Shown: positions 25,803-29,506 of the stretch, one piece after another
How the letters are laid out: each line of letters starts with the position of its first letter
How positions within the stretch are numbered: position 1 is the first letter of the stretch
NCBI GenBank assembly: GCA_009103225.1
Contig: RHPI01003020.1
Span: forward strand, 81,525-145,524
Direction: 5' to 3'
Length of the DNA: 64,000 nucleotides
DNA from: Chlorokybus atmophyticus
Lineage: Eukaryota; Plantae; Mesostigma and Chlorokybus algae
Program-made: the position numbers and the translations under genes
The notes under the pieces: model-generated
Told to the model about the DNA's origin: nothing
The model's database searches: none
Seen by the model: the letters and a program-made list of their open reading frames with translations, nothing else

Positions 25803-28800
25803 TCACTGCCAGCTGGACAAAGGCTGCATCTCCGGCATGGGCGCATCCATGAGAGAAGTGCTCCACAGCACCGCGACGGTTGCGGCCCGGCGCATTGGCG
25901 AGCGCACAACAACGTTGACCACGCCCTGGTTGGGATCCTCGATGCCGCGGCCGATGTCGAAAGGGTTGCAGGACCACACCTCGAAGTACGCGTCGTCGGG
26001 GCTGAGGATCTTGCCGTTGAGCTGACCACCATTCTGCATGAGGAGAGGGGAGCAATTGTCACATTGTCTGCGTGTGCATGCTGTGTCAGCCAACCCAATG
26101 TCACCTGACTGAGTAGGATTGTGCGGGATCCGGATGCATCCTCTTGGATCGTTGCGCGGATGTGGTACATGCTGATGATGTCAATGGGATCTCCGTAACG
26201 CACCTGCACGCAACACATGCAAATGAGGACGCATGCATAGTTAGCATAGCATAGCACTACTAAGTCCTGACGCACCTCGTCTTGCACAAGCAGGCGTGCG
26301 TTGGGTGCCGGCACGTCTTTCATTAGGGCGATCCCGCGCGCAGCGTACTGAGCGCCCGCGTAAGCTTGGGTCAGGTCGACGATCGTGTGCGAGCGGTTGG
26401 CGGACGAGTACATACTCGTTATGGGGCACACGGCGCTGTACTCTTGGTTGACTGCACGCAGCTCGGCCTGCGCATAGGGCGAATGAGATATGGAGGGGAT
26501 GTATCAATTCTGCTCGTGGATGTGGACTTTGGTACCTGAGTTGTGTTGCTGATGGCCATTGTGTTGTGGCCTTCTGTGCGTGTACGGTAGTACCTGCAAT
26601 GCCAAGGCGAAGAAGAGCTGCAGTCAGTGCCTTGCAATTACTGATTCTGCACAACATCAACAACAACAAAAAGCAGGAGACCAAGTGCTTACGCGTAGCG
26701 CCGGTTGCCCGGTGTGAAGTAGCCGGGCAGCGCGTAGTTGTCAAATCCGAGGTCCATGAACCAGCGTCGGCCGCCGTGGTCAAACACGAAGCTGCCCAGG
26801 TCCAGATGCGCGTGGGAGGACTGCGTGGCGGAAGGGTTGGCACCGGCCCTGATTGCAACGTATACGCCAGACGGATCAGACCAGCTCGTGCGCATGAAAG
26901 CCAACTCCACTTGAAACCCTGAGCAGGTCAGGCACACACATATTTTGGTACTCGCTGTGTTGGGTTGACAGAACAAAAGCGCACATGCACACACATTGCT
27001 TACCGCGGTTGACGTTGTCCAGGGGAAGTGGGTTGCTCGTGGCATTGCCGACAAATATGGCCGGGTTTCGCGCTGCCCAGAACAGTCTGAACCACAGCCC
27101 CGTCTGCTGCAGTGCGGCCTCGTTGTAGACCAGGTACGGGTCCTGGAAGCGCAGGGCCGCGTAGTACGACAGCTGGTTGGAGTTGACCACATCCAGGCCG
27201 TCCGCATAAGAGAAGGTGCGGAACAAAGGGCTGATGCTCTGGATGCGGACGTAAGCGGAAGACTGTGCGACAAAACAACAAACACACATCATCACAACAG
27301 AGTCCCTAAGCAGGGCTGCATGCATGCAGGATGCATGCGCACGTGTGTGCGCATGTGTGCGCCTGTCAGTGTAGTGCGTGTGTATGTGCGCATGCGTGTG
27401 TACACATACATTGACAAACACACGCATGCGCATTTGTGTGTTTGTGTGTCACTTACACGCAGTGCTCTCCTGGTGCCGAAGCCGTAGTCTTTGTTGAGGC
27501 CCAGCTGCAATGCGTCGATGGCGTGCGGCAGGTTGAGCCCGATGTAACTGGCATAGTACGGGCCCTCGAACGGGGCTCCGGTGGCTTCAAACAGGGAGAC
27601 GGCCACCTCAAGACCGGGAAGAGACTGCGTCAAGACCTGGACATATGGTGGTTGATACCCACGAAGTAGACAGCACCGACATATACTCTTTACCTGCTGG
27701 CACAGGTCCATGTTGTTCTCAGCAAAAACAACCGCTGCGAGTATGAAGCCCGTGAGCGAGTTGGGATTGACGTTGGAGGTCTGCACCACACGTTATAGTC
27801 AAGGCGTAAGAGCACACAGCCGTGAGAGACAACCCAAGACCCACAGCAGCATACCACGTTGGCGAGCACGGGAAGCATGCCGGTCTGCATCACGGGGTTG
27901 AACGCGTTGGTGACGACGGCGTTCCATACTCGGGTGCGCTGCGTGTCTGTCATGTTGTTGTAAAGCCAGTCGTAGCCCCACGCGGCGGCCTTCAGCCAGT
28001 CTGTCACTGGAAGCCACGCCTCAATCTTGTAGGGGGACTGATCAATCCTGTGGGGGGGAGAAGTGTGGAAAACGGACACACACACACACACACACACACA
28101 CACACACACACACACACACACACACANAGAGAGAGAGAGAGAGAGAGAGAGAGAGAGAGAGAGAGAGAGAGAGAGAGAGAGAGAGAGAGAGAGAGAGAGA
28201 GAGAGAGAGAGAGAGAGAGAGAGAGAGAGAGAGAGAGAGAGAGAGAGAGAGAGAGAGAGAGAGAGAGAGAGAGAGAGAGAGAGAGAGAGAGAGAGAGAGA
28301 GAGAGAGAGAGAGAGAGAGAGAGAGAGAGAGAGAGAGAGAGAGAGAGAGAGAGAGAGAGAGAGAGAGAGAGAGAGAGAGAGAGAGAGAGAGAGAGAGAGA
28401 GAGAGAGAGAGAGAGAGAGAGAGAGAGAGAGAGAGAGAGAGAGAGAGAGAGAGAGAGAGAGAGAGAGAGAGAGAGAGAGAGAGAGAGAGAGAGAGAGAGA
28501 GAGAGAGAGAGAGAGAGAGAGAGAGAGAGAGAGAGAGAGAGAGAGAGAGAGAGAGAGAGAGAGAGAGAGAGAGAGAGAGAGAGAGAGAGAGAGAGAGAGA
28601 GAGAGAGAGAGAGAGAGAGAGAGAGAGAGAGAGAGAGAGAGAGAGAGAGAGAGAGAGAGAGAGAGAGAGAGAGAGAGAGAGAGAGAGAGAGAGAGAGAGA
28701 GCAGCTGGTTACCAGTCACCAGGGCCGAGGGTTGTGATGTACATGAGGTCGTCAATAGCGTACGCAAGCTTCTTCGGGTCTTGGTCAATGAGGAAAGAGC

Positions 28801-29506
28801 CCGCCACGCTCACGATGCGATCTGCAAAGTTGCGCGCAGTGTACCTGAGCGACACATATGTGTTGCCAGGTGTTTTCCGCATGCAGAAAACACTTGGTAC
28901 GGATCTGTTGGGACCTCCGTCAGGTCGCTTGCACAGACACACACTCACGTGACGGAGGCTGAGCGCGGGGTGGCGATGGTGTTGTTGGCGACGAGCTGCG
29001 TGGCTTTGCAGAAAAAGTAAGGCTGGCCCGCGGACCTCGTGTTGCACAGGGAGCGCGCCGCTGGAGACAAAATACACGCATATGCACGCATACACGCACA
29101 CGCACACGCACACGCACACGCAGAACTCTGTCAAGCAACTTCACAGTGCAGGCCCTTCGAGGTATGCATAGTCTTTGCCTATGCATGTGTCGCACGCAGC
29201 CAAAGCATTTCATTTGCGCACATGCACAGGAGCCAGGGGAACAAGCAGATTGGGCACCAGGTAAGACCTCAGGTGGAACCGCAGGACCTCACCCCAAGCA
29301 GCAGAGGGGCTCATGCTGGCTATACATACAGTCTACTGACCTGGAATTAGTCCTGGGGAGATGCCAGTGCGGGGATGGCCCGGGCGAAGGGTGCTGAGAG
29401 CGTCAGAGTAAGGGCTGCTCTGCGCCAGTGCTACTGGAAGCAACTTGACGCTGCTTGAGCAGAGCACAAGCAGGAGTACCCAAAGGGTGGTTGTGTGAAG
29501 CGCCAT
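25803..29506 (-). CDS. Secreted heparinase II/III-like polysaccharide lyase, paralogue 1 (multi-exon)
   Basis: Signal peptide MALHTTTLWVLLLVLCSSS. Spliced exons give AAWGYDWLY, EGPYYASY, FSYADG, SSHAHLDLGSFVFDHGGRRWFMDLGFDNYALPGYF and YYRTRTEGHNT. Stop TGA at 25803; GT-AG introns in phase. Confidence 0.85.
28077..28701. repeat. Intronic compound microsatellite (CA)n-N-(AG)n
   Basis: (CA)n 28077-28126, N at 28127, (AG)n 28128-28701; the length may be inflated by gap filling. Confidence 0.95.

Follow-up and report, generated by a model that had tools for sequence, protein, structure and literature searches.

Predicted secreted lyase genes of the PL35 type, apparently gained from bacteria, in the streptophyte alga Chlorokybus atmophyticus

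Polysaccharide lyase family 35 (PL35) was defined only recently and is essentially bacterial; in land plants, the pectate and rhamnogalacturonan lyases (families PL1 and PL4) are secreted wall lyases that act on uronic acids by beta-elimination. The solved PL35 structures, GAGase II of Spirosoma fluviale (8khv), GAGase VII of Bacteroides intestinalis (8khw) and a chondroitinase (9o3q), combine an alpha/alpha-toroid with a beta-sandwich. Here we describe a gene with this fold, named gene A, which lies at 25803-29506 on the minus strand of a 64,000-nucleotide stretch of the Chlorokybus atmophyticus genome (contig RHPI01003020.1, positions 81,525 to 145,524; "the window" in what follows).

The protein product of gene A has in common with the three PL35 enzymes the fold, the catalytic Tyr, His and Asn and four Mn2+ ligands, at only 20-24 % identity, and it differs from them in being eukaryotic, in being encoded with 11 introns and in carrying a putative eukaryotic signal peptide. 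The bacterial proteins composed of DUF4962 and Hepar_II_III_C domains have the same length and domain order, but their genes are intronless and located in operons, and DUF4962 is undetectable in the N-terminal halves of the algal proteins. The land-plant PL1 and PL4 lyases, although likewise secreted and acting by the same chemistry, have unrelated folds (beta-helix and beta-sandwich families) and showed no sequence relation to gene A in the searches performed here. We read gene A as a functional nuclear gene of Chlorokybus that codes for a secreted PL35-type lyase and goes back to one old bacterial transfer, and we assign this reading a probability of roughly 0.8; the proposal that the enzyme acts on a wall or mucilage polymer is its least-supported part.

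The exon structure was established by translating the minus strand of region 25700-29600 in three frames and joining the open segments at GT-AG sites. The coding sequence is 1935 nt long (644 amino acids), from the ATG at 29506-29504 to the stop codon at 25805-25803, and its limits are exactly those proposed in an earlier annotation made from the sequence alone (the first-pass annotation). It runs in one frame through 12 exons separated by 11 introns, all of them GT-AG; ten span 57-280 nt and the remaining one, intron 3, has 665 nt. The motifs quoted by the first-pass annotation were all located in the exon translations: GYDWLY in exon 4, TSNVNPNS in exon 5, EGPYYASY in exon 6, HAHLD in exon 8 and GHNT in exon 9. 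The features of gene A are, in the direction of transcription:

25803..29506, minus strand: coding region of gene A, a PL35-like lyase; 644 codons and a stop, read in a single frame through 12 exons, with GT-AG introns throughout.
29790..29829, minus strand: probable exon of the 5' untranslated region (UTR), carrying a GT donor and an ATG that is out of frame; 80 % identical to the sequence upstream of gene B (see below), not seen in reads at gene A.
29341..29506, minus strand: exon 1; holds the start codon and the signal-peptide-like N-terminus, followed by the family's conserved opening, L-R-x-x-H-P-R; family-profile positions 9-46; 80 % identity to gene B.
28949..29060, minus strand: exon 2; the sole exon with no significant family-profile match; 90 % identity to gene B.
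28713..28844, minus strand: exon 3; the two conserved Arg of an A-R-x-x-x-x-R segment.
28048..28712, minus strand: intron 3; 665 nt, nearly all of it a pure dinucleotide microsatellite of roughly 600 nt, (CT)n/(GT)n, which reads as AG/CA along the plus strand, with one N.
27855..28047, minus strand: exon 4; GYDWLY helix.
27694..27780, minus strand: exon 5; SNVN segment with Asn204 (27774-27772), the carboxylate-neutralising residue by alignment, and Ser203 at the Asn191 position.
27457..27636, minus strand: exon 6; E-G-P-Y-Y, the second Tyr being Tyr258 (27555-27553), aligned to the catalytic Tyr246 of GAGase II.
27004..27262, minus strand: exon 7; end of the toroid and linker.
26693..26918, minus strand: exon 8; H-A-H-L-D with the predicted catalytic His412 (26814-26812) and the predicted Mn2+ ligands His414, Asp416 and Asp432 (26754-26752).
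26536..26593, minus strand: exon 9; G-H-N-T with the fourth predicted Mn2+ ligand, His461 (26568-26566).
26276..26467, minus strand: exon 10; beta-sandwich.
26105..26203, minus strand: exon 11; beta-sandwich.
25803..26033, minus strand: exon 12 and stop codon, from the exon model and transcript contigs.
25469..25802, minus strand: 3' UTR, from the extent of transcript contigs; the contigs of runs X1, X2 and X3 begin at 25469-25478.

In the N-terminus encoded by exon 1, a short polar stretch precedes a hydrophobic core of 13 residues, after which comes a small-x-small site (VALA followed by QS). Judged by eye, it is a putative signal peptide, in keeping with what had been annotated before. Among the public gene models of Chlorokybus atmophyticus (EukProt), Chlat1/4579 (P0001 below) matches exons 4-12 at 100 % identity, spanning Met169 to the C-terminus, which bears out the assignment of the gene to an alga. 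The public model is truncated downstream of intron 3, perhaps owing to the microsatellite in this intron, whose counterpart in gene B is about 165 nt long.

Transcript contigs of public runs were compared with the exon model, and nine of the 11 splice joints were found in them. The contigs of runs X1 and X2, from the same organism, are interrupted with respect to the genome by eight gaps of 71, 72, 68, 99, 85, 194, 57 and 74 nt, bounded by CT and AC on the plus strand, which correspond to introns 4-11. The joint across the microsatellite intron 3 is counted as seen because the loose end of a contig at 28048 runs on into the bases of exon 3. No joint between exons 1 and 2 or between exons 2 and 3 was seen in the public-run contigs over gene A; both are supported by the GT-AG sites, by the continuity of the frame, by the matching exons of gene B and by the N-terminus of the paralogue P0015.

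Run X3, with the same organism label and from a different sample, yielded a contig about 92 % identical to gene A over 27524-27942, at a depth of about 4200, from which the same two introns had been removed. This version is probably the orthologue of another Chlorokybus strain or species, or else a highly expressed close paralogue. A contig of run X4, from another study and of low depth, was unspliced through intron 11 (25922-26136), as expected of genomic DNA. The runs were guessed to be RNA, since contigs devoid of the introns of an intron-containing gene are hard to account for otherwise. Gene A is transcribed and spliced. The X1 transcript contig is 3319 nt long, about 1 kb beyond the sum of the 3' UTR, the coding sequence and exons 1-3; this could be due to a long 5' UTR or to fusion with a neighbouring transcript.

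The reading of the locus as bacterial contamination of the assembly, or as a recent dead insertion, was suggested by the fact that all relatives outside Chlorokybus are bacterial. It is refuted by the eleven spliceosomal introns and their removal in the transcript contigs. It also disagrees with the presence of seven paralogues on different scaffolds, with a ratio of non-synonymous to synonymous substitution rates (dN/dS) of 0.15 between gene A and its duplicate gene B, with an identity of only 30-37 % to any bacterium and with the spliced X3 version carrying the same introns in another sample; we consider it virtually impossible. The splicing and the purifying selection sustain the earlier description of a domesticated gene with many short introns of host type.

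To assign the family, P0001 (residues 169-644) was used as the query for whole-protein and fold searches, and residues 1-168 were covered exon by exon. Against the PDB, the sole matches of P0001 at E<0.01 were the PL35 chains 8khv (2.6e-26), 8khw and 9o3q (E up to 4e-17), and the alignment with 8khv spans 139-604 of its 614 residues. A PL35-like affiliation, offered as a guess in the first-pass annotation, was thus the only one returned by the solved structures. Exon 8 alone matched 8khv at 3e-12, as well as 8khw and 9o3q, and exon 4 alone matched the same two GAGases; exon 6 alone gave no match in the PDB, and the catalytic Tyr was placed later by means of P0001.

The Pfam domain PF07940 (Hepar_II_III_C) was detected in P0001 with 54.5 bits, against a gathering threshold of 24, and all seven Chlorokybus paralogues passed this threshold. 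In the single-exon Pfam scan of gene A, significance was reached by exon 8 only (PF07940, 3.8e-8, 33.6 bits). A match of exon 7 to T5_p143 (E 0.033, below the cut-off) was rejected as noise. With a profile built from 91 relatives, all exons of gene A except exon 2 aligned collinearly, together spanning 9-610 of its 611 positions, so that nothing appears to be missing from the protein between the end of the putative signal peptide and the C-terminus.

The fold was examined on an AlphaFold model of P0001, computed from a 91-sequence alignment, with a mean predicted local distance difference test (pLDDT) score of 94.5 and a predicted template modelling (pTM) score of 0.93. Helices extend up to model residue 193 and strands begin at 205, corresponding to a helical part followed by a beta-sandwich, and for residues 169-644 the toroid-plus-sandwich architecture anticipated by the earlier annotation was recovered. 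A Foldseek search with this model returned PL35 first (E 7e-28; 8khv and 8khw, with a template modelling (TM) score of 0.80, and 9o3q), then PL15, PL33, PL17, PL21 and PL12. A protein-atlas search returned bacterial Hepar_II_III clusters only.

Mutagenesis of GAGase II has identified Tyr246, His401 and Asn192 as essential residues, together with the Mn2+ ligands His403, Asp405, Asp421 and His457 (eLife, PMC12088678; the numbering of the paper equals the chain numbering plus 22). In the alignment of P0001 with 8khv, Tyr258, His412 and Asn204 of gene A fall on the three catalytic residues, the first two being the Tyr and His already named as catalytic from the motifs, and His414, Asp416, Asp432 and His461 fall on the four metal ligands. 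These seven residues are invariant in all seven Chlorokybus paralogues and in the 91-sequence alignment.

The NNWN-like segment of the family, which had been described as changed to TSNVNPNS, proved to be changed in part. The SNVN of gene A aligns to the NNWN of GAGase II, with the neutralising Asn (Asn192) retained and Ser203 at the position of Asn191. The latter position is occupied by Ser in both window copies, by Asn in P0005 and P0006 and by Thr in the remaining three paralogues; in GAGase II, Asn191 is an auxiliary, specificity-related residue outside the catalytic triplet, and His188 stands there in the alginate-active GAGase III (PMC12088678). Further, every algal copy departs from the bacterial state at about 25 positions that are conserved at 85 % or more among 84 bacterial relatives. 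One of them corresponds to the substrate-binding His136 and carries Ala, Gly or Ser in all algal copies (Ala in gene A); at another, the Trp that follows the neutralising Asn is Val or Ile (Val in gene A). By alignment, the predicted catalytic machinery is intact and the cleft is altered, and the replacements across the algal clade agree with a changed specificity.

The altered cleft residues would also fit a uronate C5-epimerase of the same fold and with the same Tyr/His machinery, which would modify its polymer without cutting it, as dermatan-sulfate epimerase does; human DS-epimerase 1 (6hzn) was indeed among the Foldseek matches (rank 37, E 1.4e-13). The full lyase triad and the metal site of gene A match those of characterised PL35 lyases, however, and these lyases are by far the closest relatives in both sequence and fold (TM score 0.80, compared with 0.68 for 6hzn). 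We retain epimerase activity as a remote alternative only.

Beyond what the first-pass annotation described, the window contains a second copy of the gene, and at least seven PL35-like paralogues occur in Chlorokybus on different scaffolds. Gene B was located by exon-by-exon tblastn, head-to-head with gene A at a distance of 23.9 kb, and has the same motifs and the same putative signal peptide. The paralogues are:

Chlat1/4579, P0001: gene A.
Chlat1/4582, P0151: gene B, 53414..56400, plus strand; same 12 exons and intron positions as gene A, catalytic motifs all kept.
Chlat1/9200, P0015: paralogue.
Chlat1/2902, P0152: paralogue.
Chlat1/6903, P0004: paralogue.
Chlat1/62, P0005: paralogue.
Chlat1/2860, P0006: paralogue.

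Genes A and B are 83 % identical in protein and 85 % identical in coding DNA, with 0.52 synonymous (dS) and 0.079 non-synonymous (dN) substitutions per site and a dN/dS of 0.154. Compared in this way, genes A and B are the products of an old duplication, and purifying selection acts on each of them. The public model of gene B starts at about 53062, reads part of exon 1 in another frame and skips parts of exons 3-4, and is probably mis-annotated at its 5' end. Identity to gene A among the other paralogues goes from 83 % down to 34 %, and the divergence among the seven is deep (30-40 % identity).

Relatives of gene A were sought by an exhaustive protein search with exon 8 (74 residues), of which the best 150 of 1818 matches were listed, and by three word-indexed searches in which 8000 candidates were scored each. 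Among the matches listed for exon 8 there was one at 100 %, P0001, and neither that list nor those of the word-indexed searches contained a homologue from another eukaryote. All matches outside Chlorokybus in the word-indexed searches were bacterial or metagenomic proteins of the DUF4962 + Hepar_II_III_C type, with 27-37 % identity; a profile of the seven paralogues recovered one of its own members and bacteria among the 8000 candidates scored. The closest sequences outside Chlorokybus among these matches, with 30-37 % identity over the full length, are uncharacterised proteins of Verrucomicrobiota, Planctomycetota, Acidobacteriota, Armatimonadota and Myxococcota, mostly from metagenome-assembled genomes (MAGs), and the Chlorokybus paralogues are one another's best matches. 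When each prokaryotic species was represented by one genome, 71 loci were recovered, for the most part in soil and freshwater MAGs of Verrucomicrobiota, Planctomycetota, Acidobacteriota, Armatimonadota, Chloroflexota and Myxococcota.

The third match of the exon 8 search, a protein of Penicillium taxi (P0003, XP_057060499.1; E 3e-18), was rejected as a homologue: it is a NACHT-ankyrin protein, 16 repeats of which resemble by chance the stretch of H-x-H-L-D and F-V-F-D-H-G. Searches with short exons can draw in such repeat proteins.

In an unrooted IQ-TREE phylogeny (63 rows, LG+C20+F+G4 by posterior mean site frequencies, PMSF), the seven Chlorokybus copies formed one clade with 100/100 support. 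The split that adds a Kofleriaceae MAG (P0013) was supported at 99/93 and the next one, adding a Myxococcales MAG (L006), at 99/85. A quick tree of 90 rows agreed with this placement. In a FastTree phylogeny of 472 sequences the Chlorokybus clade was kept and a metagenomic cluster (P0140) adjoined it; a relative of P0140 has GH127 and AraC genes as neighbours in a bacterial operon. Eukaryotes were sampled in all these searches and trees to the extent of their content in the protein collections used. Paths between paralogues reach up to 3 substitutions per site, a depth which suggests that the transfer is old or that evolution was fast once it had taken place.

The horizontal origin proposed at first is made probable by this clustering among bacterial sequences, and the broad clade across Archaeplastida that vertical descent would have produced was not seen in the trees. 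The Chlorokybus PL35-like genes were apparently gained from bacteria. A family ancestral in eukaryotes or green plants, inherited vertically and lost everywhere but in Chlorokybus, is the alternative to be weighed here. The age of the family in the Chlorokybus lineage, evident from the divergence of the paralogues, would be compatible with it, and the unrooted tree could have its root on the algal stem. It would, however, require many independent losses, the listed matches hold no other eukaryote, and the algal clade attaches, with the support values given above, beside particular bacterial sequences; vertical inheritance is thus highly improbable.

According to the reading that we favour, a single old transfer from a bacterium, whose nearest sampled relatives would be Myxococcota-like MAGs, would have been followed by the gain of introns and a signal peptide and by duplication. 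The reaction expected from homology to GAGase II is beta-elimination at a 4-linked uronic acid: Asn204 would neutralise the carboxylate, His412 and Tyr258 would serve as base and acid, and an Mn2+ held by His414, Asp416, Asp432 and His461 would shape a loop over the cleft. The expected product would be an unsaturated uronate at the new non-reducing end.

We know of no glycosaminoglycan from Chlorokybus. The "pectin" of this alga is an anionic, sulphated polymer that contains glucuronic acid (GlcA), galacturonic acid and beta-D-GlcA-(1->4)-L-galactose, is devoid of rhamnose, and resists land-plant pectinases and Driselase (PMC10953000). The bacterial PL35 enzymes act on sulphated, GlcA-containing polymers (PMC12088678). 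Because the Chlorokybus polymer shares GlcA and sulphate with the PL35 substrates, a secreted and expanded PL35 family is a reasonable candidate for the remodelling of the matrix. The substrate may accordingly be the alga's own wall or mucilage polymer (the "pseudo-pectin"), although this is the step with the least support. If this polymer is the substrate, the lyase might function in wall loosening, in the release of daughter cells from the sarcinoid packets or of zoospores, or in the turnover of mucilage.

The main rival to this proposal accepts a real and secreted lyase and gives it a foreign target, namely acidic exopolysaccharides of bacteria or other cohabitants in soil or aerial habitats, degraded for nutrition or for the control of biofilms on the mucilage. 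The donors and all the relatives are soil and freshwater bacteria whose polysaccharide utilisation clusters employ such enzymes, expansion to seven divergent copies would equally be favoured by a variety of foreign substrates, and the contact between the enzyme and the alga's own polymer is something we infer. On the other hand, Chlorokybus, a photoautotroph, lives inside an anionic matrix of its own, with the GlcA and sulphate that PL35 enzymes accept (PMC10953000, PMC12088678). No sign of the uptake or catabolism of unsaturated uronates turned up either, though such genes were not searched for. We hold a foreign target to be unlikely, if clearly less so than epimerase activity or vertical descent.

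Several observations weigh against the reading of gene A as a secreted PL35-type lyase of bacterial descent that acts on the alga's own polymer. Beta-elimination needs a uronate substituted at O-4, which we assume for the GlcA of Chlorokybus, and both the lyase activity and the secretion of the gene A product are predicted from homology. The public models of P0004, P0005 and P0006 have no obvious signal peptide and begin instead with N-terminal extensions of 60-230 residues; either these models are wrong or some members of the family are not secreted. Of the two Pfam domains named in the first-pass annotation, only PF07940 was found. The other, PF16332 (DUF4962), was not detected at E<0.01 in any of the seven paralogues, those with complete N-termini included, or in the sister sequence P0013, and exons 2-4 taken singly gave no DUF4962 match at E<=1; exons 1, 3 and 4 do align to the profile built from bacterial relatives. 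As regards descent, a distant eukaryotic relative could be missed among the best 150 matches to a short exon, and word-indexed searches with 8000 scored candidates saturate for so large a family and are not proof of absence. The affinity to Myxococcota could be due to long-branch attraction, because the algal stem and P0013 are long branches, and the nesting inside bacteria depends on the position of the root, because the trees are unrooted.

P0004 starts with MGQAAS, which resembles an N-myristoylation site, and the head of P0006 is rich in Gly and His. Scanned with Pfam at E<0.01, the public models of P0004, P0005 and P0006 gave no match to an Ole e 1 domain.

Going further, we tentatively suggest, as a possibility that we judge doubtful though less so than a foreign target, that Chlorokybus pairs a glycosaminoglycan-like wall polymer (sulphated, with beta-GlcA) with an expanded PL35 family of bacterial derivation as its own machinery for wall loosening and cell release, the gene having been captured early in streptophyte history. 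If true, wall remodelling in this alga would be different in kind from the pectin/PL1 system of land plants.

The PL35 family, its fold and its mechanism were already known, as was the transfer of carbohydrate enzymes from bacteria to algae as a kind of event. New are the occurrence and expansion of PL35 genes in a streptophyte alga and the proposed link to the pseudo-pectin; our literature search found no paper that connects heparinase, PL35 or this lyase family with either Chlorokybus or the streptophyte algae. An expressed, selected and expanded PL35 set in an early-branching streptophyte alga would be a clear case of the capture of bacterial carbohydrate enzymes near the base of the plant lineage. 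The same gene set supplies a candidate enzyme for a biochemical puzzle, the sulphated, GlcA- and L-galactose-rich pseudo-pectin that is resistant to all land-plant wall enzymes tried (PMC10953000). Should the lyases cut this polymer, they would be the first tools for dissecting it and would reveal wall remodelling before true pectin evolved. Should they not, the family would still offer PL35 enzymes of a eukaryote in which the cleft residues are altered and the specificity may be new.

The sequences upstream of genes A and B are also related. In the 400 nt upstream of both start codons (29508-29829 on the minus strand and 53062-53413 on the plus strand) the two genes are about 80 % identical. 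This region includes a short, conserved exon-like piece that opens with ATGGCGCTT, nine bases that are also those of the real start, and closes in a GT donor. The real ATG is preceded, at a distance of one base, by a good acceptor, CTGCAG, and in gene A the putative UTR intron would extend from 29789 to 29508. The same upstream exon is part of the public model of gene B, P0151. If the piece is spliced in this way, its out-of-frame ATG would open an upstream open reading frame (uORF) of about 40 codons overlapping the main start, and such a uORF could act in the translational control of genes A and B.

The region between the two lyase genes is flanked by 2-kb blocks of low G+C content at 22001-24000 (0.33) and 50001-52000 (0.31), compared with about 0.50 elsewhere. 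Overlapping long open reading frames are present on both strands at 50706-51541.

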